Assembly: GCF_000143415.4 (NCBI RefSeq)
Contig: NW_003314297.1
Location: 1,217,430 to 1,281,429 of the forward strand
Length of the DNA: 64,000 nucleotides
Reading direction: 5' to 3'
Source: Selaginella moellendorffii
Lineage: Eukaryota; Plantae; Lycopodiophyta
Shown in pieces: positions 1,356-48,456 of this stretch (position 1 is the first letter of the stretch; each line of letters begins with the position of its first letter). The position numbers were made by a program, and so were the translations under genes. The notes beneath the pieces are model-generated. The model worked only from the letters and a program-made list of their open reading frames with translations, had not been told where the DNA came from and did no database searches.

Positions 1356-3830
1356 GTTCGGCTAAAGTTCTTTCATAAAAGTTCTAGAGATGATGTGTAC
1401 TATTAGTTCAATCACTTTACGATGATTATTATATATTATTCTTGGGATGATAGTGTAAGTAACTAAATTTTTTATTTTATTTTAGTCATTTAATTACACC
1501 TTTTATCACTTGGAGGAGTCTCATTCACAACCTCTATATGTTTTATTCTTGACTTAAGGATATATTAACCCTGTGAGTGGCATCTATACCACTCAGGCTT
1601 TACACTTGGTCCAAGTGTTCTACTTATCCAATCCCAAGTATCATTAACATATCAGCTTGTTACATCAAGGCCATGTCCATTAACCTTTGTCTCATTAGTA
1701 ATCTAAAACCATTTATACCATAACTTAATTTTTCAAAGATTAAGCCATTTGTTCATAAATGGTTCATAAGACCACATTTTAACATCCTTAGGATGCTTAG
1801 AGATATAAGGAACACCATTTCCCAATATTCTTTCTTCAGTCCCCACCAAATCCCTCTTCATTTATAGTTTTGCTTGGTAAAATTGCCATTGGGTTAGGGC
1901 CCAAAAGCCCGACCATTAAGTCCCATTGATCTCTAAAACTTCTTCACTACGTGACTATGCCTTTAGTCACTATACAAGAGGATTATTCTTCTTCCTTTCC
2001 ACAGTTTAGGACTTTAAGACAACCTTTTGAAACACCACGACCCTATACAAGCGTCTTAGGTACTCCCCACTTTCCACCTTTAGATGCCTTAACTATGTGG
2101 CTAGAGCGAGGTTCTAATGAACTATACCAGATATCTAAGTAAGTAGTGCTACCCATACTTGGATTAGGAGCATTAACCATTCCATCTCTTGCGGGAGCTA
2201 AAGTTAGCTCTTGAACACTTCACCAAACTATTTTGCATGTTTGTCTGTATTCACTTTAGTATTTGACTCCTTAATAGTTATATCATCACCCAACACATGG
2301 GTATAGCTTTCTTGGATCATACTAGCCTTTCTTGGCTAAATTGGTTCCACTAAAGTTCAACCCCCACACTTTCCCTATTATACTTTTGGAACCCTTTATA
2401 ACCTCCCTTTTGTAGCGCATGTGATTATGAGATGAGATTTGGATATATTGTCACCGTGGATCCTTGGAACCTTGGGGGATAAATGGGGATAAAATAGCCA
2501 CTAAGGGCTCTCTCATAAAGAAATTGCCCCTTTTCCAGTTGGCTTAAGGGGAGAGAGATAAGATGCGCTACAGTTGGTATCGGAGCAAATGGCACGGGTT
2601 CAATTCCCATCGATTAGTGGCTACTTAAAATATAATATACCCTTGAGCAAGGTATATTTCTACCCCTAAATTTGAAAATCGTATGTATTAGGCATCCATA
2701 TGTACGTCCTTCCTCTTGAGGAGTATCCCAGACGAAAGTATCCACCGTGGGATTGCAATACGGGTGGATGACTAGTTGCCTCATATGGAATAGTTGGTCT
2801 ACACAATGGAAGGATTAGTAGATTAATGTAAGCGACTAATTTTTCCATTCTACTTTAGTCACTTAACCACACCTCCGACCACTTGGAGGAGTCTCATTCA
2901 CAACCTCCATAAGTCCAACTCAGGACTTGGGGCTTGCTAGCCCCGAGAATGGCATCCATGCCACTCAACCTTAGCACTTGGTCCAAGTGCTCCACGTGTC
3001 CGATCCCATGATCGACACCCCAAGGTACCACCGACGTATCGGCCCGTTATGCTAAGGCCATGCCCAATTACCTTGGTCACACTGGTGGTCCAACACCACC
3101 TGCATTCCAATCCCGTCTCTCAAAGACGGGGTCATTCGTCCATGAGGGATCATCCCAGATCCACTCCTTAACATCCTTAGGATGCCTACAGATATGGGGA
3201 ATAGCCTTCCCCAATATCTCTGTTCCGGTCCCCACCAAGTCCCTTTCTGTCCTTGGCTGTGTTCGCCAACACTGCCACTGGATCAAGGCCCACCGGCTCG
3301 ACCACTAAGTCCCACTATCCTCAAGGACTTCCTCACTGTGTGACTGTGTCCTTGGTCACCCCACCAGAGGGCTACCCCTCTTCCTTTCCACAGTCTGGGA
3401 CTTTGGGACACCATTTCGGAACACCGTGGCCTTACGCGAGCCACCTGGGTACTCTCCCCACCTTTCGCCTTTAGGTGCTCTAGCCATGGGCTTAGAGCGA
3501 GGTTCCGTTGAGCCACGCCTGGTATCCAAGTAGGTAGTGCCACCCACACTTGGACTGGGAGCATCGGCCAGTCGATCTCCCAGGGGAACTAGAGCCGGCT
3601 CTTGAACACTTCACCAAGCTACCCCGCTTGTCGGTCTGTGTTCACTCTAGTCTTGGACTTCCCAGTGGGCAGCTCATCACCCAACACTGGGTCCGGCCTT
3701 CCTGGGCCAAACTGGCCTTTCCTGGCCAAACTGGCTCCACTGCAGTCCTCCCCCTACTATACTTTTGGAGCTCACCAAACCCCCCAGGGTCTGGGAGACA
3801 AACGCTTTGGGCTTTCACCCTCTCAGGCTC

Positions 3831-3959
3831 CGGACTTGGACTCGGACTCGAACTCGGACTCGGACTCGGATTCGGACTCAGACTCGGGCTCGGGCTCGGT
3901 CTCGACCTCAGCCTCGGTCTCGGTCTCGGCCTCAGCCTCGGTCTCGGTCTCGGTCCCGA

Positions 3960-3997
<38 letters not shown>

Positions 3998-4424
3998 CCA
4001 GTCTCGGTCTCGACTTCGGACTCCATCTCGGACTCCATCTCGGACTCCATCTCGGGTCCATCTCGGGTCCATCTCGGACTCCATCTCGGGTCCATCTCGG
4101 GTCCATCTCGGACTCCATTTCGGGTCCATCTCGGGTCCATCTCGGGTCCATCTCGGGTCCATCTCGGACTCCATCTCGGGTCCATCTCGGACTCCACTTC
4201 GGACTCCAACTCGGGTCCATCTCGGGTCCACCTCGGACTCCACTTCGGACTCCATCTCGGACTCCATCTCGGGTCCATCTCAGACTCCACTTCGGACTCC
4301 AACTCGGGTCCATCTCGGACTCCACTTCGGACTCCAACTCGGGTCCATCTCGGACTCCACTTCGGACTCCAACTCGGGTCCATCTCGGACTCCACTTCGG
4401 ACTCCAACTCGAGTCCATCTCGGA
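3831..4424. repeat. Compound GGACTC/GGTCTC hexamer, 12-bp and 36-bp higher-order array inside the 3' LTR
   Basis: (ggactc)n, then (ggtctc)n, then (ccatctcggact / ccatctcgggt)n, then the 36-bp unit gggtccatctcggactccacttcggactccaactc(g). Confidence 0.95.
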
Positions 4425-7400
4425 CACTCCCACGTGTCATGTGTTGGTCCTTTTGGGTCCCTTTTTGGAGCCTCGCCTTTTGCTCGCTTCGTGCTCGTTC
4501 CTCGAGCACTTCGTTGGGAGTTCCACTCCCGCTCTTGACTTTTCAAGTCGGAGCTTTTGGTCCAAACGTGTTACGCTCGTTTGGCTCTCGCTTCGGCCAC
4601 TACCATGTGGCGCCCTTCCGGCTCCACTTTGGGGCCTAGGGATTTTGTGTCTCACAACTCCACCACCCATAGACGAAGTTCGATGTCCTCATCGAACGGT
4701 GAACCATTTTATAAAGTAACACCCGCATGTGTTACCATTTCCATCCTTGGCGCGTAGCCAATATTTGTCAATGGTGTGACATTGAAGGCTCACCATGCCT
4801 TCTCCATATTCGTCAATGGTTGGACATTGAAGGCTCACCATGCCTTTTGCATATCCTCTAAGGAGGGTAGTCTCTCCAACTTAGAGACTGATTGGACCAC
4901 ATATAGTGGTTCTCTCCTTTTATTGGTTTAGTTCTCGCTAAACCTCTTAGAGACCCTTCTCTAAGTCAATCCCACTACTCCTTCTCGAGTAGTCTCAATT
5001 TCCATCGATATAACCTTTGCACTTTGGAACTTTGAATTTTGACTTCTTGGAGTCAATTTCCTAGGTGTCTCCGACACCTTGCCTTGCACCTTTTGTGCAA
5101 CTCCACTTCCCATCCTAGGAAGTTCTCTACTCGAGGGCACCATCATCCTCTCTTCTATTTCGTGCCAAAGTTCCAGTTATCATACTTTGTGCTAGGGCTG
5201 TTCATGGCCCTATCATTTGGCTACCTTACCGCTCCCTCCCTTGGAGCTTCTACTTTCGCCAAATCGGAGCATTTCGGAATTCATCCTTGGAAACACACTT
5301 CCTTTTCCGGAATTTGTTAGCGTCCAACACATTAGTGTTCCTCGCCTAACTTTGTCACTTGGATTCCTTCCAAGGGATTCCACGGCCCTATCTTGGCCAC
5401 TCATCTTTTGCTCCTATCCGTTGATTGTTGCACCAAGCGACATCGAATCTCTACCTCCCTCCTTGAGGTATTCTTGTGATTCCATAGCAAAGGCTCTGCT
5501 TTGCCAAGACTAGGGTGTTCGCCCCTAGTAAGTCTCTTTAGCATCTTCTGCTGTGGGCTCTATCCACGGCCCAACTTTGTGACCCTCCCATGGGTCTCTT
5601 TAGAGACTACTTTCCTTGGACACAGTATGCCACCGCAATGACATAGCTCATTTCCCTAGGGTGCTTTTCCCACTTGGTCACCTTGACCAAGCCACACCAT
5701 CATCAATAGTTCAAATCAACACTTTGAACTAGGAACCTTATTCCTTAACCCAAACAAGGACCTTGTCCTTATTTAGCCACAAGATCACCTAGTGATCTCA
5801 CCTCGGCACCTTAACAGGTTTGCCAATAGGTACTAGGTCTTCCAGACCTTTAATTTGTTAACTACGACCCCGGGGGCATCCCCCACACTTGGCGGTGCGC
5901 CCAAGCCAGCCCTTCCGGCCAAGGGTCCATAGCAACTGAGATTAGGTGTCCCCATCTCACTCACCACGTCCTTGGTGCCACTCGCACCAAAGCGTTCAAG
6001 TTAGATATGCCGAGCTTTCACACTAAGCAATCTAACCGTGCATCACGACTCCGAGGCATCCCTCGCTTGACGGTGTGCCCAAACCAGTCTCCCCACTGAG
6101 AGTCCATGACCACCGAAATATGAGTGTCCTCATATTCCAAACCATCACCACGCCCTAGTGATTTGGGACTCGAACCCAAGCACTAGAGGGTCGGGACTCG
6201 AACCCAACCTCCGTATATGCATCTACGGACGGCATCACACAAGATGCCTGGCGTGACTCCCCACGCCGGTGCACCAACTTATTTTTAAAGCGCGCTACAG
6301 ATCACAGTTTAGGAACCTAGTTCCTCCACACTGCCAAGTCCTCTCACTTGACATGTCTGCGATCATGCATGGACTCCTCCATGCTCGGCCCCATGGCCCA
6401 CCCTTTTTGAAGTTATCACCTTCAACTAGGGTATTTGTTCCCCCGACGTGCCAATCTCGCTTGGCAAGTCCTCCGACCACTGTAACATGGTTCCTGCATA
6501 AGCGTGAAAGTCCTTGACCATCGACTTTCGTTCAAAGCCCTCTCTTTGAACACTCGGGAACTACTTCCCTAACCTTGATAGCCTTGCCTCATGGCAAGCT
6601 TCAAGACCACGCTTCTGCTGCGCCACTCTGATTTCGCGCGTTCCATGAACCATTTACACTTGGCCTTTCTAAGTACTAAGCTACCTAGAATCGTCTTTGG
6701 GAACCTTGAAGGAACTCTGTCCCTCAGCTTGCTAAGGCCTCCCTTTTTGCAAGCCTTCCAAATGCCACATAGTCTAACATGGACAATTCCATATTTTAGA
6801 CTCTCCATGGCATCACGGTTGCTAGCGGCAACACCCTCGAGCCCCCACTTGATTCTCCACTCCCAGCTGGCATAACCAACCTTGGTTATGCCCTTTGATT
6901 CCTATGGTTCGGTTCTATCCCCTTACTTCTTGCTTTTTGGCTTCACACCTTTCCTTTGGTCATTCTCCTCCAGACCAGGAGGATAGCTTTGCACTTTCTA
7001 TCATGCTTTAGCAAGTATTCTTAGGGATGAACCTACCCAATAGCCTAGGGAGTGGTTCCTCAATCCGGGTATGCTCACCTTATAATCCCACACACTGGGA
7101 TTACATTGTTGCTTATGGGCCTTTACATGCCCATCACTAGCCTTGCCAAAATTCCATTTTGGCTTTGTCCAACTCGGGTAGACAGTCCTCCCCTGTCTCC
7201 GCAACCTTGGACATTTGGATAGCACCTTCTATCCATCATTCGCTAGGGACTTAGTCCCTTGGGCTTTATCCATTGCCCTCGCGACATCAAACACCACCTT
7301 CTGGTGTTCTAGAGTGTTCGGGTGTCCCAATGATGGCTTTCTTGACAATGAGTATTTCCTTTTATGACATTGACTTACTATATCGCAACACAAGCAACTT

Positions 7401-7860
7401 ATCCCCCGTAAGGGTATATCCAACTTCCCTATGCTATTAAGAAGTCTTGGGTAGCTACCTTCTACCCGTGTAACCAGTTACTTTGCACCTCTTGCTTAGT
7501 TGCCTTGTAGTTGTCAAGTCCTACAACTCATTGCTGGTGCTTCCACACCTCCATCATTATCTGGGTCACCACACTCCAACTGCATGCTCTGCAGCTTAGG
7601 CTATGCGATTCCCATTTCCATTGGGATTCCTTTGGCAAGGGGTTCTCATGAACCCACCAACATAGCCTCAAGGTATCACACCTTGGCACATTTGGTGTCT
7701 CCACACCATCGGCTCCACGAGCCTACCTCTATGACATTTCCCCTTCGTGTCTAAGTCTTTGCCAAGACCAACACCGCTCTTTCTCATGCCAACCATCCGT
7801 TAGCACTGCACCATAGAGGTCACACACAACTTTATGTCAAAGTTGTTTTCTTCTGGGAAC

Positions 7861-9628
7861 TGTGAGACACAAAATCCCTAGGCCCCAAAGTGGAGCAGGA
7901 AGGGCGCCACATAGTAGTGGCTGAAGCGAGAGCCAAACGAGCGTAACACGTTTGGACCAAAAGCTCCGACTTGAAAAGTCAAGAGCGGGAGTGGAACTCC
8001 CAACGAAGTGCTCGAGGAACGAGCACGAAGCGAGCAAAAGGCAAGGCTCCAAAAAGGGACCCAAAAGGGCCAACACATGACACGTGGGAGTGTCCGAGAT
8101 GGACTCGAGTTGGAGTCCGAAGTGGAGTCCGAGATGGACCCGAGTTGGAGTCCGAAATGGAGTCCGAGATGGACCCGAGTTGGAGTCCGAAGTGGAGTCC
8201 GAGATGGACCCGAGTTGGAGTCCGAAATGGAGTCCGAGATGGACCCGAGTTGGAGTCCGAAGTGGAGTCCGAGATGGAGTCCGAGAAGGAGTCCGAAGTG
8301 GAGTCCGAGGTGGACCCGAGATGGAGTCCGAGATGGAGTCCGAGGTGGACCCGAGATGGACCCGAAATGGAGTCCGAGATGGAGTCCGAGATGGACCCGA
8401 GATGGAGTCCGAGATGGAGTCCGAGGTGGACCCGAGATGGACCCGAAATGGAGTCCGAAGTCGAGACCGAGACCGGGATCGAGACCGAGACCGAGACCGA
8501 GACCGAGATCGGGACCGAGACCGAGACCGAGGCCGAGGCCGAGACCAAGCCCGAGCCCGAGTCCGAGTCCGAGTCCGAGTCCGAGTCCGAGTCCGAGTCC
8601 GAGTCCGAGTCCGAGTCCGAGTCCGGAGCCTGAGAGGGTGAAAGCCCAAAGCGTTCGTCTTCCAGACCCTGGGGGGTTTGGTGAGCTCCAAAAGTATAGT
8701 AGGGGGAGGACTGCAGTGGAGCCAGTTTGGCCAGGAAAGGCCAGTTTGGCCCAGGAAGGCCGGACCCAGTGTTGGGTGATGAGCTGCCCACTGGGAAGTC
8801 CAAGACTAGAGTGAACACAGACCGACAAGCAGGGTAGCTTGGTGAAGTGTTCAAGAGCCGGCTCTAGTTCCCCCGGGAGATCGACTGGCCGATGCTCCCA
8901 GTCCAAGTGTGGGTGGCACTACCTACTTGGATACCTGGTGTGGCTCAACGGAACCCGCTCTAAGCCCATGGCTAGAGCACCCAAGGGCAGAAGGCGAGGA
9001 GAGTACCCAGGTGGCTCGCGTAAGGCCACGGTGTTCCGAAATGTTGTCCCAAAGGCCCAGACTGTGGAAAGGAAGAGGAGCAGTCCTCTGGGGTAGTGAC
9101 CAAGGACACAGTCATGTGGTGGGGAAGTCCCAGAGGACCGTGGGACTTAGTGGTCGGGCCTGTGGGTCTCGATCTAGTGGCAGTGTTGGCAAACACGGCC
9201 AGGGGCAGAAAGGGACTTAGTGGGGACTGACAGAGGGATATTGGGGAAGGCTATTCCCCTTGTCGGTGGGCATCCTAAGGATGCTAAGGAGTGGATCTGA
9301 GATGACCACTCACGGATGGTTTGCCTAGTCTTGGAGAGCCAAGACGGTGATGCAAGTGGTATTGGACTACCAGTGTGGCAAAGGTGATTGGGCATGGCCT
9401 TAGCGTAACGGGCTGCTATGTCGGTGGTACCTTTGAGTGTCGGTCATGGGATCGGACACGTGGAGCACTTGGACCAAGTGCAAATGTTGAGTGGCATGGA
9501 TGCCATTCTCGGGGATAGCAAGTCCCAAGTCCTGGATTGGACTTATGGAGGTTGTGAATGAGACTCCTCCAAGTGGTCAGAGGTGTGGTTAAGTGACTAA
9601 AGTAGAATGGAAAATTTAGTCACTTACA
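7861..9628 (+). mobile_element. Solo LTR of the same LARD family, inserted in the opposite orientation inside the young element
   Basis: Begins tgtgagacac and ends cacttaca. TSD GGAAC (7856-7860 / 9629-9633). Carries the array at ~8092-8626. Confidence 0.95.
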
Positions 9629-11498
9629 GGAACACCTTTCCCATAACTTTAGCATGGCACATTTTGCCATCAATGAGATACCCTCTGTTCTCATCCTTGG
9701 ATCCTATGATCCCCCCCCATCCTTTGTGGGGTACAACACACCTCAGTCCAAATGCTTCCATCAGTCCTTTTAGGACCATTCCTTGACTCTACTTGAGTCA
9801 TCTAGCAGTTTTGGACTTGGTTAATCCACAGACCCGTAAGGTCTTACTTGTGAGGCACTAGCTCACTGAAATACACTTCTTGCATTCCTGTCCTACTCAA
9901 AAGGACTATTTTCACAAGTGTTACTCCGACACTTGATTTTGTTCTCTGGGGGCAACCTTTGCCCCTTAGGACTACTTGTCCATGTGATGAGAACACCAAC
10001 TCATCCACTTAATACACCCCCAACTCCTGGGGTTGTTCCAGCATTTATTAGAGTAGCCCCGGCTACCTTTTCAAGGACTTGAGTCCTCTTCCGTATTTGA
10101 CCTCCCACGGTCATTACTTCTGGTCTCACATTCATGAGCACCAACCTCAACTATATGAGGAAAATCTTTTGACTCCTTTATTGCTTTGGAGTCTTTATTT
10201 TTCCCGTGATCCCAACTGTAGTTGTTTACCACAACTACATTAGCCAGTTTGCTAAGTCAAATGCTCATCTAGATCACATCCTCAACTCTTTGAGGAAAAC
10301 CATATACTGTTCCCAAGATCCCAAAGTCGTTCCATTATTGGCCCTTTTCTATCCACCACCTCGTCTACAAGTTCACACATGAACTGTAATGGAGAGCCAT
10401 GTCTTCCCGACTTGCTACTCCTCAAGGATAGGCCCACTCCTCGGACCTTCCGATGCCAACACTAGTGGTGATATACTTGAGCACCAATAAAAGTCGGACT
10501 AAGGAACAGCTCCGATACCAAATTGTAAGCGACTAATTTTTCCATTCTACTTTAGTCACTTAACCACACCTCCGACCACTTGGAGGAGTCTCATTCACAA
10601 CCTCCATAAGTCCAACTCAGGACTTGGGGCTTGCTAGCCCTGAGAATGGCATCCATGCCACTCAACCTTAGCACTTGGTCCAAGTGCTCCACGTGTCCGA
10701 TCCCATGATCGACACCCCAAGGTACCACCGACGTATCGGCCCGTTACGCTAAGGCCATGCCCAATTACCTTGGTCACACTGGTGGTCCAACACCACCTGC
10801 ATTCCAATCCCGTCTCTCAAAGACGGGGTCATTCGTCCATGAGGGATCATCCCAGATCCACTCCTTAACATCCTTAGGATGCCTACAGACATGGGGAATA
10901 GCCTTCCCCAATATCTCTGTTCCGGTCCCCACCAAGTCCCTTTCTGTCCTTGGCTGTGTTCGCCAACACTGCCACTGGATCAAGGCCCACCGGCTCGACC
11001 ACTAAGTCCCACTATCCTCAAGGACTTCCTCACTGTGTGACTGTGTCCTTGGTCACCCCACCAGAGGGCTACCCCTCTTCCTTTCCATAGTCTGGGACTT
11101 TGGGACACCATTTCGGAACACCGTGGCCTTACGCGAGCCACCTGGGTACTCTCCCCACCTTTCGCCTTTAGGTGCTCTAGCCATGGGCTTAGAGCGAGGT
11201 TCCGTTGAGCCACGCCTGGTATCCAAGTAGGTAGTGCCACCCACACTTGGACTGGGAGCATCGGCCAGTCGATCTCCCAGGGGAACTAGAGCCGGCTCTT
11301 GAACACTTCACCAAGCTACCCCGCTTGTCGGTCTGTGTTCACTCTAGTCTTGGACTTCCCAGTGGGCAGCTCATCACCCAACACTGGGTCCGGCCTTCCT
11401 GGGCCAAACTGGCCTTTCCTGGCCAAACTGGCTCCACTGCAGTCCTCCCCCTACTATACTTTTGGAGCTCACTTTGGCCTTTCACCCTTTCAGACTCC

Positions 11499-11614
11499 GG
11501 ACTCGGACTCGGACTCGGACTCGGACTCGGACTTGGACTCGGACTCGGATTCGGACTCGGACTCGGGCTCGGGCTCGGTCTCGGCCTCGGCCTCGGTCTC
11601 GGTCTCGGTCCCGA

Positions 11615-11646
<32 letters not shown>

Positions 11647-12148
11647 CCGGTCTCGGTCTCGACTTCGGACTCCATCTCGGACTCCATCTCGGACTCCATC
11701 TCGGACTCCATCTCGGCGTCCATCTCGGACTCCATCTCGGACTCCATCTCGGACTCCATCTCGGACTCCATCTCGGGTCCATCTCGGGTCCATCTCGGAC
11801 TCCATCTCGGGTCCATCTCGGACTCCATCTCGGACTCCATTTCGGGTCCATCTTGGGTCCACCTCGGACTCCATCTCGGACTCCATCTCGGACTCCATCT
11901 CGGGTCCATCTCGGACTCCACTTCGGACTCCAACTCGGGTCCATCTCGGGTCCACCTCGGACTCCACTTCGGACTCCATCTCGGACTCCATCTCGGGTCC
12001 ATCTCAGACTCCACTTCGGACTCCAACTCGGGTCCATCTCGGACTCCACTTCGGACTCCAACTCGGGTCCATCTCGGACTCCACTTCGGACTCCAACTCG
12101 GGTCCATCTCAGACTCCACTTCGGACTCCAACTCGAGTCCATCTCGGA
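11499..12148. repeat. Same compound tandem array inside the 5' LTR, with different unit counts
   Basis: Same units as 3831-4424, with a longer run of ccatctcggact. Confidence 0.95.
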
Positions 12149-14805
12149 CACTCCCACGTGTCATGTGTTGGTCCTTTTGGGTCCCTTTTTGGAGCCTCGC
12201 CTTTTGCTCGCTTCGTGCTCGTTCCTCGAGCACTTCGTTGGGAGTTCCACTCCCGCTCTTGACTTTTCAAGTCGGAGCTTTTGGTCCAAATGTATTACGC
12301 TCGTTTGGCTCTCGCTTCGGCCACTACCATGTGGCGCCCTTCCGGCTCCACTTTGGGGCCTAGGGATTTTGTGTCTCACAATTAAGTGCGGAAATGGAGG
12401 TATTGGTTCTCCTTGGCGCATGTGATCATGGGATGAGATTTGGATATACTGTCACTGTGGATCCTTGGAACCTTGGGGGATAAATGGGAATAAAATAGCC
12501 ACTAAGGGCTCTCTCATCAAGCAATTACCCATTTTCCAGTTGACTTAAGTGGAGAGAGATAAGGTGTGTTACACCTTCCCCCCCTTCCTTTGGGCTTTCA
12601 CAATGGAAGGATTGGTAGATTGAGTATGGAAATGGAGGTATTAGTTCTCCTTGGCGCATGTGATCATGGGATGAGATTTGGATATACTGTCACCGTGGAT
12701 CCTTGGAACCTTGGGGGATAAATGGGGATAAAATAACCACTAAGGGCTCTCTCATCAAGCAATTGCCCCTTTTCCAGTTGGCTTAAGTGGAGAGAAATAA
12801 GGTGTATTACACCTTCCCCCCCTTCTTTTGGGCTTTCACCCCTGAATCTCAATTTTTGTCTCAATCTCCATCTTGGATTTGATCTTGGTCTCTATCTTGG
12901 ACTCTTTCTCAGACTTCATCTCAAACTCCTTTTTGGACTCCATCTCAGACTCCATCTTAGACTCCATCTCAGACTCCATCTCAGACTCCTTCTCAAACTC
13001 CATCTCAAACTCCTTCTTATACTCTATCTCAAACTCCATCTCAGATTTAGTTCCAACACTTTCATATGTCATGGCACTTGCTATGTGTCAATCCTTCTTG
13101 TATCTATTTTTAGAGACCCATTCATCAATCGCTTTGTGCTCATTCCTTGAGCACTTCATTTAGAGTTCCATTCTTGTTTTTAATTTTTGAGTCAGAGCTT
13201 TTAATTCAAATGTGTTACACTTGTTGAATTTTCACTTCAACAACTGCCATGTGACACACTTGTGACTTCACTTTGGGGTTTAGGGATTTGTGCCTCATAA
13301 CTCCACCACCCATAAACAAAGTTTGATGTCCTTATCGAACAATAACCCACTTTATAAAGTAACCCTATCATAAATTATCATTTTTATCCATAGTACCAAG
13401 CCCATATTCATCAATGGTTCGACACTAAAGGCTCACCATGCCTTGCCCATCCTCTAAAGAGCATAGTCTTTCCAATTTAGAGTCTCATAAGATTATATAT
13501 AATGGTCTTTTCTATTTATTCATTTAATTTTCATTAAACATGTTAGAGACACCTTCTCTATCTCAATCTTACTACCCATTCTAGAGTAATTTTAGCCTTT
13601 AGCAATAGAGTCATTATACTTCAGAATTTTAATATTGACTTCTCAAGTTAATTTCTTAGGTGTTTCCAACACTTTGATTGCCCATGTTGTGCAAACTCCA
13701 CTTCCCTATCTTAGGAAGTTCTTTACTAAAAGGCATCATTATCCTCTCTCTTATTTCATACCACCCTAGACATTAAATTTCACATATTCTTAATTTGTAC
13801 TAAAGTTATCCATAGTTTTATCATTTGGCTATCTTGCTATTCCATTTCTTGAAACTTTCACCTTCACCAAATTGGAGCATTTAGAAATCCCATATTTGAA
13901 AACTTATTTTCTTTCCCACAATCCATTAACATTCACCACCTAATGATTCCTTACTTAATTTATACTTTGGATTCCTTTTAGTAACTACTAAAGCTTATAT
14001 TTGGCAACCACTAGTCTTTTGTTTTTATCTTTTAATTATTACACCAAGTAATATAAAATCACTACCTCCATTTTTGAGGTATCCTTTTGGTTCTATAGCA
14101 AAAGCTTTGCTTTGCCAAGTTTAGAAAAGATCCCCCCTAGTAAGTTTCTTTAGCATTTTCTATTCTAGGCTATATCCTTGACTTAATCTTGTGACCCTCA
14201 TTTGGGTCCTTCTTTAGAGACTATCTTTTTAAAATTCATAATACCATTGTATTATCATAATTTATTTCACCTAGGTGCCTTTCCCATTTGGTCACCTTAA
14301 CTAAGTTACATTATTATTAACAGTTCAAATCAACACTTTGAATTAGAAAACTTATTTTTAACTTAACAAAAAGTTTATCTTTGTTTAGCCATAGGATCAC
14401 TTAGTGATCTTATGTTCATATATTAACATGTCTACCAATAGGTACTAGGTCTGCCAAACCTTTAAATTGTTGACCATGACTCTGAAGGCATCCCCCACAC
14501 TTGGTAGTGTGTCCAAGTTAGCCATTTTGGCCAAGGGTCCATAGCAATTAATATTGGGTGTCCCTATCTCATTCACCATGTCTTTGATGCCACTTGTGTT
14601 CAAGTTAAATATATTAAGCTTTTACACTAAACACTATAACCATGCATCATAACTTTGGGGCATCCTTTACTTGGCATTGTGCCCAAGCCAACCTCTTTAG
14701 CAAGAGTCTATGATTGTCAAAAAATAAGTGTCTTTATATTTCAAACCATCACCATGCCCTAATAAATTGGGACTCAAACCCAAGCATTAGAAAGTTAGAA
14801 CTCAA

Positions 14806-15988
14806 TATAGTGAACATGAATTTGGAGATGAATTCCAAGCTTATTGTACTACAAAACAAGGTATATTCTTAATTCTACAAGCACTAACTCCCCATATCTA
14901 GCACTTGCATGTAAAACAGTGTCAGATGGTATCTGGCACAATTTTGGCATACTAATGGCTTAACGCGAGGAGGAGGGTACTTTACCAACTAAAACAATAT
15001 GGAGCTTGGGTTTAGACTTAAATTGAATGCAGAACAAGGACCTAGTGGAAGCCAAACTAATGTCTCAGGAGGGTTGGATATACATTCCAACCACTATCCA
15101 TACTATACATTTAGAACCCCTATAGCGAGGGTGTTTGGTGGACACAATAAGCATATAATGATATTTAAGGATTAGTCTCAATATCATAGTGTTTCCAATG
15201 CTAGCAAGTGTAAGCCAATAACATAAGTTTCTCATCACTATATCAAGTATGTTTGATTTTAATAACAACTTGGAATTTCCTTCTTTAATGCCCTTTTGGT
15301 CTAAGTGCACATGTGCTAGCTAGTTTCTCAACTAACTTGGGCAGAGACCATAAAAGGAACCAACAATACCAACCTTTTGTCATCATGATAGTAAAGAGAG
15401 AGTGTTTGTAAGGACTGGCTGACAAATATCTTTCGATACCCAAAGTCATATTCGTAACACTCTCCCCCCCTTAGAGAAGATCAACGTCCTCATCAATGTA
15501 TACCCTAGTTTAACAAACTGCCAAGAAAATAACTTTAAAAGTTAATGGATAGCACATTATATGGGAAACACACTAACTTAAATAAATGATAGAACTACCT
15601 CTTATTTACATCCAAAGATGTTAAAACTCAAACACCTTTTGGCTATCACTAATAAGGAAATGACTAATAGAATGAGCCACCCTTGCTGCTCTTAAGTACC
15701 ACTCAGCTTACAATGAAATGATACATCCCTGCCTACAGGGACATAGGGAAAGAGCCAAAAGCCCAACTTCTCTAAGCAAGAAATCAACACTGTCGAGAAG
15801 ATTTAGATAATTATTATAAACTAACAGATAAAGTTGTTTATATAACCACACCCCTTTTCAAAAATGAGTCAATGAAAGAGAGGTGGGGATTTGTGATCAA
15901 TCTATAATAATTATCCCCATGGTTATGGATTGTACCTATGCATTGAAGTGCCAAAGTCAACCTGCTAAAATTGACTCAAGAATTAACA
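14806..15988 (-). mobile_element. Inverted 3' end (3' UTR, PPT, LTR) of the chromovirus family
   Basis: Reverse complement of ~21807-23259. PPT gggggggagag precedes TGTTACG at 15459 on the minus strand. The LTR has an internal deletion relative to the right-hand copy. Confidence 0.85.
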
Positions 15989-16190
15989 AGACTTATGTGG
16001 AGCAACTATGCCAAGGTTGGTTTTGAGTTACTAAGGTGATGGGCAAAGCTCAAGATAGGTATCAACGTGATAAAAATCAATATTATCAGGATGTATCCTA
16101 TCAAATGGGAGATCAAGTGTGGCTATCTTCCCAAAACTTGAATGTCAAGGGGTCTTTGTCTTAGAAATTGTTACCAAGGTATATCAAGCC
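15989..16190 (+). mobile_element. Duplicated integrase-region fragment
   Basis: agacttatgtggagcaactatgccaaggttgg... matches 20588-20790 in the same orientation. Confidence 0.85.
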
Positions 16191-16440
16191 TAACAACAAG
16201 GACTAACACTTCATACATTGGTTTTGGTACTAAATTCAGGTGTGTTACATTTGGTATTAGAGGAATTGTTTCAGTGATTTCTATCCAACTTTTGTTAGAA
16301 TTTCTGACTCAAGTTGCATACGCAGAGACTTTTTTAGTAGATCTGAAGCGGCCTGTGTAGGATTAACTAGATTGCACCATTCAGTAAGAACATTTTATAC
16401 ATGTTCAGTTACTGATAGATGCATGCATGCAGCTAATGGG

Positions 16441-19400
16441 ATGGTGAAAAGAAACCGTGCTGCTGACGCTGAAACCTCTAGACGGGTGAATCAAAAGGAG
16501 GAAACTCCTGCTAGAGATGTTTCGGAAGAGGATGAGGCTGAGTCAAAAGAGGAAGAGTTAAATGCTGCAGCACTACAACATATGGCTCCGGAAGTCGAGA
16601 TCAAGAATTTGCGAAAGGAAGTTCACAAATTGAAGAAGAGGAATAAGAGGAGGAAAAAAGAAGCTGAGGCAGTTAAACCAGTTAAGCCTAGGCAACCAGA
16701 CTCCTCTTCAAGTTTTGAGGATGATGAAGTTCTAGAACTACCCCCGATTGCACGAGTTTCAAAGTTCAAGCCTCCAAAACCACCCAATTTCAGAGGCATG
16801 CGGGACTATCAGGTTTTGGAAGACTGGGTCTACAATATGGAAAACTATTTCATAGCGGTAGACGTAGATGATCATACAAAAGTTGTGTGCGCGCAATCCT
16901 TTCTCACCGATCATGCCAAAACTTGGTGGTGCCAAGTGTGTGCTGAAAAAGGGCAGACTAGAAGTTGGACCAAGATGTGGTCTCGTATCCATAAGAAATA
17001 CTTGCCGGATGATTTTGGTTTGAGACTTCGTGTGGAGCTACGGCAGTTAAAGTAGCGAGGGGACCTTATGCATTATATTAATGCGTTTGCTCATAAATGC
17101 ATTATAATTATAAATATGAGTGACGAAGATGCTCAGAGTTATTTTCTAGAGGGTTTAAGTTCACTTTCTCGTAATGAGATTTTGAAGTTTAAGCCGAAGA
17201 CATATCTGGAGTGTACACAGCAAGTTGCCTTTAGTCACTCACTCATGGAACAATATCAATAGCTGTATACTGGTATCTCGAACAAGAAAAAGAATTCTGA
17301 GAATAAACAAGGTGATTAAAAATAGAGAGTGGAAAGAAGGTTCCGCCTTGAAAGCTCACAAACAACGGTTAACAAAGGTGGTGGTGGTTGGAGACCACTA
17401 GCAACTTCTTTTAGTCCTAGGCCCTTTGTTCCTCCTGGTGGGTACAAGTAGTAGCAACTTGCAAAACTTGCTTTTAGTGGAACGGGTAGTGTGGGTCATT
17501 GTTTCCATTGTGGAGAGTTAGGACATAGGTCTTTGGAATGTCTCAACAAGCATAAGACAAGGTTTTGTGTTAATATTATGAAGGAAGATGGTGGTGGTGA
17601 AGCTGAAAGGGTTAACGAGTTGGTCAATGCAGACTATGAGGAAAAGGAGGTGAGTTACTTTCGTTGCTTTCCTCAAGCTTTTCTCGCAATCAATACAAAC
17701 ACTGATCTGTTGATGTATTTGGTAGGCTTTGTCCGCGGACACCAAATCCGAGTGATGATTGACATAGGAGCTACACACAGCATGATATCTAAAGACTTAG
17801 CTAAGTTGTTAAGATTGAATCCTGAGCAAATGTCACTTCCGGTTTGTAAAAGGTGGGCAAGTAGCCAGAAAATTTGTGAGTGATGTTCCAATAAAAATGT
17901 CCAAGTGGAAAAAAAGAGTGGACTTGGTAGTGTTGAAGATACCAAATTTTCAAATAGTGTTTGGTATGGATTTCTTCAACAAATATATTAAAGGGATTTA
18001 TGATACTGGACAAAGCTATATCACATTTAAGTTAGAAGGATGTCCTGATATGTCCTTCCAGTTGCAAAAGATCTCCTAAAAGGATTGGGATGTTAAGTCA
18101 CCAACACTCTCAACTTTTATCATTTGAACCCAAAAGGTTTGATATCCCTTCTCAGCTGCTTTTTGAGCGGCTCTCACAATCAAGAACTCAATTTGAATTG
18201 GTGATGGGGTTGATCCTATACCAAAGAAGATATTGGAGTTTTTGGCACAGAATCAGGATATCTTCCCAAATGATTTGCCACTAGGGCTACCTCCTAGCCA
18301 TGAAGTTGATCATCGAATTAAGGTTATTCTAGGTTCTAAACCACCTACAAAAGCTCTGTATCGGTTGAACATCAAGGAGATGGCTGAACTCACGAAGCAA
18401 CTCATGGAGCTTCTTGACAAAGGTCATATTCAACTAAGTAAGTCACCTCATAGAGCATCAATCCTTTTTGTTATGAAAAAGGATAGAACCATGAGGATGT
18501 GTATCGATTATCGGGCACTCAACAAGATCACGGTCAAAAACAACTATCCTTTACCTTGCATTGATGACTTATTTGACCAACTCTTAAAGGTTAAGTATTT
18601 TATGCGACTTAATTTGTGGTTTGGGTATCATTAGATACGGGTGGTGGATCAGGATGTGGAGAAGATAACCTTAAGACTCGGTACGGATCTTATGAGTTCT
18701 TTGTCATACCATTTGGGTTATGCAATGCTCTGGCAACGTTCAGCACTATGATGGATAGAATATTTAGAGATTATTTAGACATATTTGTGTTTCTATATAT
18801 TGACGATATTCTAGTCTTCAGTGAAATGTTGGAGGATCATTTAAAACACTTGGAGCTGGTGTTCCAGAAATTGCATGAACACAAATTGTATGCTAAGAAA
18901 AGTAAATTTGCTTTTGGATAATTGCACGTGAACTTTCTTAGACATATAATTGGTGGTGGCATAATTGAGGTGAATCCAAAGAAGGTTGAAATGGTGAAGT
19001 CTTAGGAAGTTCCGACCACTGTATTAGATGTTTGTTCCTTTCTCGGTTTGCGGGATACTATCCCAAGTTTGTCTGCAATTTTGCAAGAATTGGTCTTCCG
19101 TTGACTGAGTTAACGAAGAGTAGTATATCGTTTCATTGGACACCAGCTTGTGAGCGTGCTTTTGTACGGTTGAAGGAGATCTTGACTATGGTTTCTATTC
19201 TCAGAATCCCGGATCTTGATAAACCCTTTGAAGTGCATTGTGATGCATCTAACTACGCTATAGGTGCCATGTTACAGCAAGATTGTGACAAAGCGGTTGG
19301 CATTACACTAAGGTGACATGATTGTCCCATTGTGTTCTATTCCAAGAAATTGGATGAAACCCAACGAAGATGGCCAACGCATGAGAAAGAGATGTTTGTT

Positions 19401-21132
19401 ATAGTATTGGCATTGGAACACTGAAGACACTATTTGGGTGAACATACCAAAGTTTATACAGATAGTAACACACTAAGCTACTTTGCTATGCAGCTTAAGC
19501 TTATGCCGAAGCAAGCCCGTTAGCAAGAGAAGTTCGCTAGATTTAATATTGAAATCATCTATAAACTTGGTGAAGACAATATTGTTCGGATGCCTTGAGT
19601 CGTCAGGCTCAATTCCGGGCAATATCAGCAATTAATGTGGACTGATTAGAGGATGTTCGAGCTTCGTATGGAAGTGATCCATTCACAAAGGCAATCTTGC
19701 ACCATGCAGAGTTGTCGAAGTAGAACCCTGATAGCAAAGCAGTGAAAGTTGCTAGTTGAACCAATGTGAAGCTTCACTTCTTAGTTCGGGATGGGCTTAT
19801 ATTCTATAAGCAAGAAAGATTGTATCTTCCCTTTAAGGATTTGCAATAGTTTTTTTTGCAGGAACATCATGAGCAATCTTAGCAATGGGACATGGTGGAA
19901 AGTGAAAGACTCTAGCTTCATTGAAAAGGGGATTTTTTTGGTCTGGTATAGAAGGTGATGTAGTGGATGTCTGTTTGTGCCTTATATGCCAGCAATGTAA
20001 GTGCAGAACTGAGAAGCAGGCTAGAAAGTTGCAGTGCATTCCAGCACCAGCATAGCCATTTCAGAGTGTGACACTTGATTTCGTCACTCACTTGCCGAAG
20101 TCTAAGGGTTATGTTACTTTGATGGTGGTTATGGATTAGTTGTCCAAGCTTGCACACTTCATTCCAATTGTGGGAATAGTAAATGCAAAACAAGTAGCAA
20201 ATTTTTTTTTCCATGAAATAGTGCAGGTTTGTGGTCTTCCCGAAGAGATAATCTCGGATAGAGATTTGAGATTTACAAAAAAGTTTTGGGGCACACTATT
20301 CTAGTTGTTCGGAACCAAGTTGAAGTTAAGTACGGCTTATCATCCTTAAACTAATGGGCAGACTGAATGTGTGAATGCTCAAGTTGAGTATTATCTGCGG
20401 TACTATGTCGTGGCATACCAACACAATTGGGTTGAGCATTTGGACATAGCAGAAATTTGTTATAACAACACATTTCACAACGCTATTGGCTGTTCTCCAT
20501 GGGAGATGCTGCAAGGGAATGCTCACAGGGTGCCTCAACAGATTGTTGTACCGAAACCAATGTCTAAAGTGTTGGTCCCGGCTATTGAGACTTATGCGGA
20601 GCAGCTATGCCAAGGTTGGTTTAGAGCTACTGAGGCAATGGGCAAAGCTCAAGATAGGTATCAATGTGATAAGGATCAACATTGTCGGGATGTATCCTAT
20701 CAAGTGGAATATCAGGTGTGGCTATCTTCCTAGAACTTAAACATTAAGGGATCTTTACCTTGGAAGTTGTTACTGAGATATATTGGACCCTATTGGGTGT
20801 TGAAACAATTTGGTGATGTATCCTATCAGTTGGATATTCCCTAAGCGATGTCCAAACTTCATGATATGTTTCATGTCAGTTTACTAACCCCATATCATGA
20901 GGATCCTGGCCGCTCTTGGACTGTCCGGCCGGCTCCAAATGTTATTAATGGTGAACCAGAGTATGAGGTTGAGGCTATTCTTTTGTTTCGTAAGGCACGT
21001 GGTGGTTGAACCAAAGAATATTTAGTTAAGTGGAAAGGTTACCTATCTTGTGAATCAACTTGGGAGCCTCTTAGGAATCTTACACATACTCGTGAGCTTG
21101 TCATTAAGTATGAGAATCATAATAAAGAATAG
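16441..21132 (+). pseudogene. Disrupted gag-pol (Gag, CCHC knuckle, protease, RT, RNase H, integrase, chromodomain)
   Basis: Gag AKTWW, knuckle CFHCGELGHRSLEC, protease [24 protein letters not shown]...YIDDILV, RNase H CDASNYAIGA, integrase remnants and chromodomain EYEVEAIL...YLVKWKGY...TWEP. Many stops and frameshifts. Confidence 0.93.
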
Positions 21133-21175
21133 TTTTGTAAATCTTGTAATAAATCTTGCAAATCAATAAAGTAAT

Positions 21176-21768
21176 TGTAAGCTCCTGAGTTTGGACTTCC
21201 CGGGAGGTCACCCAGCCCAGTACTATTCAAGCCCAAGGACGCTTAACTCCAACTATCCCAAGACCCTTAACCGATTGGAAAAGGGGGTGCACTCTTGTTC
21301 ATGGGCCCTTTCCCTCTATATTTGAACCCCATGGATCGTCTCTCGAGTCGTTCCCTTTGGTTGCTTACAATCCACCACGCTTCCCTGCAAGTTCACGCCC
21401 TCGTGAACGGAAGCTGAGAGCCGCAGCTCTCCCGAGAGCCTCGCTCTCTTGACACCCTACCCCTCGGGTCGAGCCCAGCGGGAGCAAACTGGACCAGCCA
21501 GATGTCAATCAACATGTGGTGTGATTCCCTTAGCCAACCAACAGAGTCGGACCCAAGACCCCTCTGATACCAAATGTAAGCTCCTGAGTTTGGACTTCCC
21601 GGGAGGTCACCCAGCCCAGTACTATTCAAGCCCAAGGACGCTTAACTCCAACTATCCCAAGACCCTTAACCGATTGGAAAAGGGGGTGCACTCTTGTTCA
21701 TGGGCCCTTTCCCTCTATATTTGAACCCCATGGATCGTCTCTCGAGTCGTTCCCTTTGGTTGCTTACA
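21176..21768 (-). mobile_element. Cassandra TRIM (5S rRNA-derived segment in LTRs), apparently identical LTRs
   Basis: 194-bp LTRs at 21176-21369 and 21575-21768 (TGTAAG...CTTACA). PBS tggtatcagag, PPT gcagggaagcgtggtgga, TSD GTAAT. 5S core gttaagcgtccttggg...agtactgggctgggtgacctcccgggaagtcc. Confidence 0.97.
21193..21248 (-). promoter_or_regulatory. 5S rRNA internal control region (A box / IE / C box) in the Cassandra LTR (second copy 21592-21647)
   Basis: Matches the plant 5S consensus AGTTAAGCGTGCTTGGGCGAGAGTAGTACTAGGATGGGTGACCTCCTGGGAAGTCC over ~56 bp. Confidence 0.9.
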
Positions 21769-26629: not shown

Positions 26630-28246
26630 CTACCAGAGGCTATGGCTGCTCCCGAGATTTTGGTCCTTGAAGCCGTCGTGCTGCGCAAACATCTCGCCGG
26701 CGTCACTAGCCATGGGCGCGGGCGTCGCGTCGCACGGCGGTATGAAGCACTCGGCCGAGAGCCCCGCCACATTGTAGGCCGCCTCGTCGATCCACCATGA
26801 CTCCTCCACCCGGCTGCGTGTGTGGCACATGGACTCCTCCCCGAATCGAAACACGCTCACCACCGTGCTGCCGGCGTGCGGTACCACCGGTGCCCCCTCC
26901 TCCACCGCGCGGTACTCCCCCAGCCGCGTCTCCACCGTCACCTCCCAGTAGGACACCGCGCCGCGCGCGGCCTGGATCCTCGTCAGCTGCGAGTCTTCCA
27001 TCCTCACCAGCAATCCTGAGCGTTGGCTGAAGTAGCCGAACGCCACGTGGCGTATCACCTCCTCCTCCACCTCGGGGTCCGCAGGGTCGGCCCCGGCCCC
27101 GTGACGCGCGGCGGAGGCGTCTGCCGGAGGTACCGCGCGGTACCCTGCGGTAAGTGCGTACGAGTCCGCCGCCAGCTTGAGCACGAAGCAGTCCTCGCCG
27201 TCCGTGCGCTTCTCGCCCACGCACCGCGCGTTGAGGAACATGGAGGCGAGCGTCTTGTGGTCGAGGCCGTGCAGCGCGCGGCGCAGCGGCCGGATTGGCC
27301 CGCGGACCGACTGCGATCCCGCCATGGGGCTCTGCTTCCACACCGTCTTGGCGTCGCAGCCGGCGCGGACCTTGGTACCGCCCACCGACAGCTCCACGTA
27401 CCATCTGTCCGGGAACATCTGCCAGAGGACGAAGCTGCCGGACTCGCAGAGCTCCCTCCCGGGCCGGATGATGCTGCTGGCGGTGGTGGAAGCGGCGGTG
27501 GCGATACCGCTGGTGGTGGTGGTGGTGGTGGTGGGCATTTGCGCGCCGCCGGCGGTGGACTCGAATTCCGTGAGCACCATCTTTAGCCTCCCCGAGGCGT
27601 ACGAGTTGTGGATGGACGTGTGGAGCTTTGCTCCCCCCGTGGCGGCAATGTACTGCTGGACGATGTACTGGGCGCTGCTCGTTTCCTGGCAAAAAGATCG
27701 AGCATTGGATGAGAGATCGAACCTCGAGAGGTCAAATCCAAGAACACACGAGCGCAAGAACCAAAGATCGAGCGAATTCACCGAGAATCCACTCCTAAGA
27801 AAAGACCAATTTCCGCGGCAAACAGAGCACTCGATCAAAGCAATTCCAGCGCAAGAAAAGAGGAACCCACTTGGAATTCCGCGACACGATCGGACCCTCG
27901 AGCTCGGATCGCTCAAAGAATCGCGAGAGAGAATGGATTCAGAACTTACAATTGGGCTGTCTTTGGGGCTGACGGTGGGAGGAATCTTTCCAACCGGGAA
28001 AGGGCCGAGAGAAATTCCCAGCGTCGCCAGCAGCTGCCTGGCTCTGAAGCGCTTGCTGCATTGAGCGATTCCGCCGCTGCCGCGGAGGCCGAGGTGTTGC
28101 AAGTGATTTTCCAGCTGTTCTTTCACCCATCCCTTGACGCCGTTGCTGTTCTTGGCCGCGAATTTGTCCGGGAATTCGAGCAGTGGCGGCAGCGCCTCGC
28201 CCAGCATTGCCACGGTCGGCGACTCGGAGCGTTTCCTAAACACCAT
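26630..28246 (-). CDS. DUF620 family protein, 264-bp intron 27949-27686
   Basis: KDSPI|ETSSAQYIVQQYIAATGG, GSFVLWQMFPDRWYVEL, RPLRRALHGLD, GYFSQRSGLLVRMEDSQL, FIPP. Confidence 0.92.
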   Translation of the reverse strand: MVFRKRSESPTVAMLGEALPPLLEFPDKFAAKNSNGVKGWVKEQLENHLQHLGLRGSGGIAQCSKRFRARQLLATLGISLGPFPVGKIPPTVSPKDSPIVSSESILSRDSLSDPSSRVRSCRGIPSGFLFSCAGIALIECSVCRGNWSFLRSGFSVNSLDLWFLRSCVLGFDLSRFDLSSNARSFCQETSSAQYIVQQYIAATGGAKLHTSIHNSYASGRLKMVLTEFESTAGGAQMPTTTTTTTSGIATAASTTASSIIRPGRELCESGSFVLWQMFPDRWYVELSVGGTKVRAGCDAKTVWKQSPMAGSQSVRGPIRPLRRALHGLDHKTLASMFLNARCVGEKRTDGEDCFVLKLAADSYALTAGYRAVPPADASAARHGAGADPADPEVEEEVIRHVAFGYFSQRSGLLVRMEDSQLTRIQAARGAVSYWEVTVETRLGEYRAVEEGAPVVPHAGSTVVSVFRFGEESMCHTRSRVEESWWIDEAAYNVAGLSAECFIPPCDATPAPMASDAGEMFAQHDGFKDQNLGSSHSLW

Positions 28247-47861: not shown

Positions 47862-48456
47862 TGTAAGCAACCAAAAGGAACGACTCGAGAGACGATCCGT
47901 TGGGGTTCAAATATAGAGGGAAAGGGCCCATGAACAAGAGTGCACCCCCTTTTCCAATTGGTTAAGGGTCTTGGGATATTTGGGGTTAAGCGTCCTTGGG
48001 TGTGAATAGTACTGGGTTGGGTGACCTCCCGAGAAGTCCAAACTCAGAAGCTTACATTTGGTATCAGAGCGGTCTCGGGTCCGACTCTGTTGGTTGGCTA
48101 GGGGAATCGCACCACATGTTGATTGACATCTGGCTGGTCCAGTTTGCTCCCGCTGGGCTCGACCCGAGGGGTAGGGTGTCAAGAGAGCAGGGCTCTCGGG
48201 AGAGCTGCGGCTCTCAGCTTCCGTTCACGAGGGCGTGAACTTGCAGGGAAGCGTGGTGGATTGTAAGCAACCAAAGGGAACGACTCGAGAGACGATCCGT
48301 TGGGGTTCAAATATAGAGGGAAAGGGCCCATGAACAAGAGTGCACCCCCTTTTCCAATTGGTTAAGGGTCTTGGGATATTTGGGGTTAAGCGTCCTTGGG
48401 TGTGAATAGTACTGGGTTGGGTGACCTCTCGGGAAGACCAAACTCAGGAGCTTACA
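47862..48456 (+). mobile_element. Cassandra TRIM, second copy
   Basis: 195-bp LTRs at 47862-48056 and 48262-48456 (5 differences counted). PBS tggtatcagagc, PPT, TSD CAAGC. 5S core at ~47985-48039. Confidence 0.97.

Follow-up and report, generated by a model that had tools for sequence, protein, structure and literature searches.

Large retrotransposon derivatives (LARDs), reportedly first described in the Triticeae by Kalendar et al. in 2004 and said to owe their classification to Wicker et al. in 2007, combine long terminal repeats (LTRs), a primer-binding site (PBS) and a polypurine tract (PPT) with a non-coding interior of several kilobases that is conserved among members, and they are presumed to be mobilised in trans. 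An element alike in each of these respects occupies positions 2827-12380 of a 64,000-nucleotide stretch, hereafter the window, of scaffold GL377601.1 in GCA_000143415.2, the Sanger whole-genome assembly of a heterozygous Selaginella moellendorffii plant. Its host is a lycophyte and its LTRs measure 1.8 kb, as opposed to about 4.5 kb in the Triticeae LARDs, to which no sequence relation is expected. Each LTR carries a compound tandem array of very short units, the number and order of which differ between the two ends of the same insertion. With good though not complete confidence, we read the locus as a non-autonomous, LARD-type LTR retrotransposon whose array, in the presumed unique 3′ (U3) region, has been varied by slippage or exchange, with no function needed to account for the differences.

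Variable tandem repeats in LTRs and in U3 are already well documented in seed plants and in retroviruses, and no new class of element is represented here. The U3 regions of the tobacco elements Tnt1 and Tto1 contain a few repeated boxes of 13-31 bp that vary between subfamilies and have a demonstrated role in the stress response. Short tandem motifs in a plant LTR U3, differing between subfamilies, are thus common to both systems, whereas the array of S. moellendorffii comprises about 70 units, known from sequence alone, in place of a few boxes with a stress role. Stress-responsive signals in the Tto1 LTRs are mentioned in PMC3485330. The U3 of ERV9/LTR12 holds 5-17 tandem repeats of several subtypes upstream of the promoter, with enhancer function (PMC11853044); it shares with the present element variable short repeats of several subtypes in U3 (here presumed), although its units are of about 41 bp with proven transcription-factor sites, in contrast to the 6-12 bp of the present units. 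Tat/Ogre elements of the Ty3/gypsy group carry hypervariable tandem repeats established as seeds of satellites (Macas et al. 2009, cited in PMC7004042 and PMC6317226). According to these last two articles, the arrays are short, vary in monomer and length from copy to copy, are thought to be born during replication and can seed satellites, much as might be supposed for the arrays described below. In Tat/Ogre, however, the elements are autonomous and the array is part of their 3′ untranslated region, after pol and before the 3′ LTR, whereas the present one belongs to a non-autonomous element without pol and occurs in both LTRs and in a solo LTR; because the solo LTR also has it, the array is placed inside the LTR itself.

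The LTR pair was located by repeat finding and by BLAST of the window against itself. LTR A (2827-4656, minus strand, 1830 bp) and LTR C (10524-12380, minus strand, 1857 bp) are direct repeats with TG..CA ends, reading TGTAAG...CTCACA on the plus strand, and they are bounded by identical copies of the target-site duplication (TSD) ATTAA at 2822-2826 and 12381-12385. When the element and one ATTAA are taken out and the flanks joined, the resulting sequence matches a paralogous repeat unit at approximately 12589-12688, with no gap across the junction. This unit represents an empty site within the window, and it follows that the element entered by one clean insertion. The direct TG..CA repeats, a TSD within the 4-6 bp range, a PBS and a PPT, which together define an LTR retrotransposon, were all found, and positions 2827-12380 are a single clean insertion of a structurally complete, young LTR element, as a preliminary description of this DNA had put it (a complete 9.55-kb element with a perfect TSD).

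The same description had listed a PBS and a PPT; both are present, and the strand, which it had left open, is now fixed. The G-rich PPT, TGGGTGGTGGAGT in sense orientation, adjoins LTR A at 4657-4669 (minus strand), and the PBS, TGGTATCGGAGC, lies at 10509-10520 (minus strand), 3 nt past LTR C. Since both are on the minus strand, the sense of the element is minus and it reads from right to left, LTR C being the 5′ LTR and LTR A the 3′ LTR. The PBS agrees at 11 of 12 positions with the canonical plant initiator-tRNA-Met PBS TGGTATCAGAGC, the reference being the canonical plant sequence rather than Selaginella's own tRNA; TGGTATCAGAGC itself is also found in the window, at 48059 next to another element. 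The plus strand was weighed as the sense strand and rejected, as the sequence following LTR A lacks a TGG start and that preceding LTR C is not purine-rich. The PPT motif TGGGTGGTGGAGT is also kept in an old relative, here called D, at approximately 13299-13314.

While the span of 9.55 kb is real, 1.77 kb of what had been taken as internal sequence proved to be a nested, inverted solo LTR of the same family. This LTR, B (7861-9628, plus strand, 1768 bp, with its array at 8094-8629), is inverted relative to A and C and is flanked by a perfect TSD of its own, GGAAC, at 7856-7860 and 9629-9633. It was also considered as one LTR of a second full element and rejected as such, given that neither a PBS nor a PPT adjoins it and that its own TSD is perfect; B is a solo LTR that was inserted later than the host element or carried along with it. 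Once B is subtracted, the element measures 7.78 kb and its true internal domain about 4.1 kb, divided into a PPT-proximal part (4670-7855, minus strand) and a PBS-proximal part (9634-10508, minus strand). Outside the array, the divergence of B from A and C is about 7%. It is uneven, at about 8% in the 949-bp part (2827-3775 of A) and 2-3% in the 235-bp part beside the PPT and a G-box (4422-4656), which may mean either that the 5′ end of U3 is more strongly constrained or that the history is recombinant. A transcript through the element would hold a hairpin of about 1.77 kb, formed by B with A or C at 87-90% complementarity, from which small RNAs directed at the family might arise. A 45-bp unit is repeated 2.1 times at 4761-4854, within the interior next to its PPT end.

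Outside the middle section that holds the array, the two LTRs of the element are nearly identical. The first 949 bp contain exactly four differences, all C/T (2944, 3050, 3193 and 3391), in agreement with the four changes counted previously over some 940 bp, and the last 235 bp contain two further transitions, which amounts to six differences in 1184 positions (0.51%, or 99.5% identity), all transitions and without any indel. A seventh substitution, from CpG to CpA, falls in a collinear stretch of 260 bp at the end of the array. With B as the outgroup, all six flank changes are polarised as derived C-to-T or G-to-A, three of them at CpG and one at CAG, a pattern that fits deamination of methylated cytosine. 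Plant substitution rates are commonly assumed to be 0.7-1.3e-8 per site per year, under which the insertion would be roughly 0.2-0.4 million years old.

The array occupies some 600-650 bp of LTRs A and C, and each young LTR combines a block of hexamers with a block of 12-mers and 11-mers. The hexamer blocks of the young copies consist of about 30 units of the type NCTCGG, arranged in runs of ACTCGG, GCTCGG, CCTCGG and TCTCGG, and the 12/11-mer blocks of 31-41 units. In A, 32 hexamer units (3827-4019) are followed by 35 units of the longer type (4020-4423) that end in a higher-order repeat of 35 bp; in C, the hexamers extend over approximately 11494-11668 and the longer units, 41 in number, over approximately 11669-12147. 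The 12-mer is itself made of two hexamer-like halves, ACTCCA and TCTCGG, and the 11-mer variant of GTCCA and TCTCGG, while the higher-order unit is composed of 12, 12 and 11 bp and is found, in both A and C, as four tandem copies with one further copy, which in A lies upstream. The nesting of hexamer, 12-mer and higher-order unit proposed in the preliminary description is consequently right, with a top period of 35 bp rather than the 36 bp given there. Elsewhere in the LTR, a 19-bp unit is repeated 2.2 times in all three young copies (3695-3735, 8721-8761 and 11392-11432).

Over this regular architecture, A and C differ to an extent that their flanks do not foreshadow. Comparison of A (3776-4161) with C (11473-11885) revealed at least four events of gain or loss of units and two replacements of units, in keeping with the earlier claim that unit number and order differ between the LTRs; the last 260 bp of the array remain collinear. 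The loss of 30 bp beside the array in one LTR, likewise reported before, could be assigned to C, as the segment is kept by both A (3776-3805) and B, and three substitutions lie within about 35 bp of the deletion. The four LTR copies in the window (A, B, C and the old D) display four array states, as had also been stated. The arrays of A, B and C, all located within 10 kb, are 87-99% alike, and the array distance between A and C, whose flanks are 0.5% apart, is about the same as that between C and B, whose flanks are 7% apart, which indicates that change in the array is not clock-like. Such behaviour fits bursts at replication, a constraint on the form of the array, or misassembly. These comparisons cover the copies in the window of one Sanger assembly.

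Within the LTR, the array extends over sense positions of about 234-830 out of 1830, in the 5′ part, and is presumably located in U3. A G-box, CACGTG (4431-4436, sense positions 221-226), directly flanks it on its upstream side and is kept in A, B and C, and a TATA-like motif, TATAGTA (3755-3761, minus strand, sense position about 896), is found about 60 bp downstream of the hexamer block; both are matches to motif or consensus only, and the array sits between them in the sense orientation. The observed/expected ratio of CpG is 1.10-1.17 in the three young arrays, compared with 0.45 in the rest of LTR A and 0.3-0.5 in the interior, and 87-94% of the units in A, B and C retain their CpG. The description of the array as CpG-rich and positioned upstream of the TATA equivalent is accordingly borne out, the downstream motif being a putative one. 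In LTR D, which is about 71% identical to A, short and degenerate 12-mers are preserved at the same position of the LTR (12866-13045), with a CpG ratio of 0 and not a single unit retaining CpG.

The interior of the element showed no sign of coding capacity. No sense-strand open reading frame (ORF) of 80 or more amino acids was listed in the internal domain, the longest stop-free sense piece being of 110 amino acids, and a motif scan of the interior in six frames identified no CX2CX4HX4C knuckle, protease, YxDD/reverse transcriptase or integrase zinc-finger motif. Ten sense-strand interior pieces had no relatives in NCBIfam, and a PDB search with six interior pieces from both strands returned nothing relevant (best E values of 0.3-0.5, to unrelated proteins). 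A search of 1.84 billion proteins with the 110-amino-acid piece yielded no true relative; the one marginal match, at E = 1e-4, was rejected as being a translated tandem repeat itself. The preliminary description had noted faint gag- or knuckle-like remnants near 9950-10350, in the PBS-proximal part, and these did not withstand the same motif, family and PDB searches, which recovered no such remnant there or elsewhere in the internal region. Rfam and tRNA scans of positions 1-24000 found nothing within the element. ORFs that span the arrays do exist, but only because the repeat units lack stop codons; a protein word search with the non-repeat start of the long ORF crossing LTR A gave no relatives, and an exact look-up of two ATG-started LTR ORFs gave no record.

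Comparison with D extends this result to the history of the family. Over the 1.48 kb nearest the PPT, the internal domain shares 75% identity with that of D (13300-14791), and the substitutions between them fall evenly on the three codon phases (129/118/124, p = 0.78), while 20 of the 21 indels are not multiples of three. The even phases and the frame-breaking indels signify that the interior evolves without codon periodicity. Moreover, the 99.5% identity of the LTRs leaves no room for a loss of gag-pol since insertion, so that the element was already non-coding when it was copied, and its earlier designation as a non-coding, LARD-type element stands. Judged by its nucleotide sequence, the element is a LARD under the working definition (no coding capacity by motif, family, PDB and protein searches, and a length above 4 kb): at 7.78 kb it lies above the range of miniature terminal-repeat retrotransposons (TRIMs), and its interior is conserved among members, two of which were compared.

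As for the mechanism, the element would have been copied by the proteins of an autonomous partner, acting in trans through the initiator-tRNA-Met PBS, the PPT and the LTR ends. The array may have grown by stepwise duplication, from the hexamer NCTCGG to a 12-mer of two hexamer-like halves, then to the 11-mer variant and finally to the 35-bp unit, and its length and order could have been changed by slipped-strand or template-switch errors together with unequal exchange. Such changes might take place during reverse transcription or later in the chromosome. Given that U3 is copied several times in each cycle of reverse transcription, the two LTRs could have differed already at integration; equally, they might have come to differ later, by replication slippage or through exchange with B or with further copies. 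Point mutation after insertion has been of the C-to-T type only, as expected of a methylated element, and the same decay would have stripped every CpG from the array of D. Turnover after insertion, slippage during reverse transcription and misassembly are indistinguishable on the basis of the present sequence.

Three observations count against the interpretation of the array as a freely varying repeat of a non-autonomous element. The nearest unique anchors are at least 495 bp away from the array differences on one side and at least 949 bp on the other, so that some of these differences could be misassembly; the substitutions clustered at the deletion in C could represent one complex event or a poor consensus; and the persistence of the array at the same LTR position in relatives that are about 29% diverged, together with the high CpG of the young copies, fits a selected function too.

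The first two of these bear on the proposal that assembly artefacts from mixed reads or haplotypes account for the unlike arrays of A and C and perhaps also for the 30-bp gap, in which case the element would be real and its arrays possibly identical. The setting is favourable to such errors, with three arrays this similar packed into 10 kb of a Sanger assembly from a heterozygous plant, the rearranged zone (A 3776-4161, C 11473-11885) being the farthest from unique sequence, and the array distance between A and C equalling that between C and B even though the flanks of the former pair are 14 times closer; the cluster of substitutions beside the deletion points the same way. On the other hand, no Ns are present and each array is internally regular; B, whose distinct flanks make its assembly safer, likewise has an array state of its own; and all six flank differences are methylation-type transitions polarised by B, as would be expected of real paralogous LTRs. 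On balance, we regard assembly error as unlikely, while according it more than token weight.

The third observation leads to the suggestion that selection keeps the array as a regulatory module of U3, with the number of units setting transcription or silencing; it would act, in one of the ways raised previously, as a tunable enhancer, a protein-binding platform or a target of methylation. Its placement between the conserved G-box and the TATA-like motif, the recurrence of a 12-mer array at the same position of an LTR about 29% diverged, and a CpG ratio of about 1.1 in the arrays of the three young copies, compared with 0.45 elsewhere in the LTR, would all be in line with this, and an analogue exists in the U3 repeats of ERV9/LTR12, which bind NF-Y and GATA factors in 5-17 copies (PMC11853044). 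Nevertheless, inspection of the units (as distinct from a database scan) turned up no known plant cis-element, the high CpG may simply reflect recent amplification of units that happened to bear it, and the array of the old copy D shows no sign of conservation after insertion. A selected module thus appears distinctly improbable. An elaboration of it, in which selection would have kept the array as a CpG-dense U3 module through about 29% of LTR divergence, unit number would tune transcription or methylation, and the hairpin of about 1.8 kb between B and the 3′ LTR would in addition yield small RNAs that silence the family, by analogy with maize Mu killer, is in our estimation a long shot. Last, that the element is a decayed autonomous one that lost gag-pol after insertion, and no LARD at all, as the reported gag-like remnants at 9950-10350 would have had it, is scarcely credible in view of LTRs 99.5% identical (too little time to lose a reading frame of 4-5 kb), an interior of only about 4.1 kb, the lack of any knuckle, protease, reverse transcriptase or integrase motif in any frame or of any relative in the searches described, and a divergence from D devoid of codon periodicity.

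If the preferred reading of a trans-mobilised element with a slippage- or exchange-varied array is correct, the locus offers a compact example of an LTR repeat that outpaces point mutation, with at least six structural events against seven substitutions in the same LTR pair. It would also show methylation-type decay erasing the array in an old copy, and would bring a family of LARD type into the mobile DNA of lycophytes, which has been little studied. The combination of a lycophyte host, a non-autonomous element, an array inside the LTR and very short units is what distinguishes it from the systems described above. No description of the family in Selaginella was found in the literature, Repbase and RepetDB being outside that search. 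An expanded satellite of the 12-mer was searched for throughout the window and none was found, the 12-mer being confined to the four LTR copies, and a 24-mer of the array had no matches among viral contigs. A single metagenome match to a 20-mer common to the four LTR copies was rejected as chance, for it bore no other similarity to the window.

The young element is itself embedded in older insertions. LTR D is split into a left part (1454-2351, minus strand) and a right part (12840-13299, minus strand), the latter followed by the D interior; as D keeps one LTR and about 1.5 kb of interior, it is truncated. LTR D contains, in three copies (2420-2586, 12421-12573 and 12659-12811), a unit of about 153 bp whose ends are TG..CA and which may represent an insertion resembling a TRIM. 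After the first of these copies, at 2575-2586, comes the PBS variant TGGTATCGGAGC, the same as that of the main element, and the second and third belong to a 238-bp tandem duplication (12390-12839). As the young element entered between copies one and two, the nest has four levels or more. There are also two copies of an older repeat, inverted relative to each other (1030-1349 plus 14817-15987 against 23602-21810), and as its left copy is split by the nest of D and the young element, the outer limits of the nest can be set at about 1350 and 14810.

Other mobile elements and several host genes were observed in the surroundings. A degenerate Ty3/gypsy element at 15989-20783, unrelated to the LTR family of the young element, is bounded by 196-bp repeats (15989-16184 and 20588-20783, 84% alike) and contains a gag ORF (16372-17055, plus strand), which weakly matches Arc capsid structures (E = 0.0075). 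Cassandra-type TRIMs carry 5S-derived sequence in their LTRs, and two small elements of the window look like members of this type. One, at 21173-21768, has LTRs of about 197 bp (21173-21369 and 21572-21768, 99.5% alike), each with a sub-threshold match to 5S rRNA (Rfam RF00001, scoring 30 bits where the gathering score is 38); the other, at 47862-48456, has LTRs of about 197 bp (47862-48056 and 48262-48456) and is the element that carries the canonical PBS at 48059. Beside the nest, the gene calls of the record between 23759 and 38000 include a cis-prenyltransferase, a metallophosphoesterase, a DUF620 protein, an RRM protein, an LRR receptor kinase and a short-chain dehydrogenase. The DUF620 gene (26633-28246, minus strand) matches LOC9653278 of S. 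moellendorffii, whose record locates the window on GL377601.1, with 100% identity across the part that was matched, and an exact look-up of the read-through DUF620 ORF gave no record.

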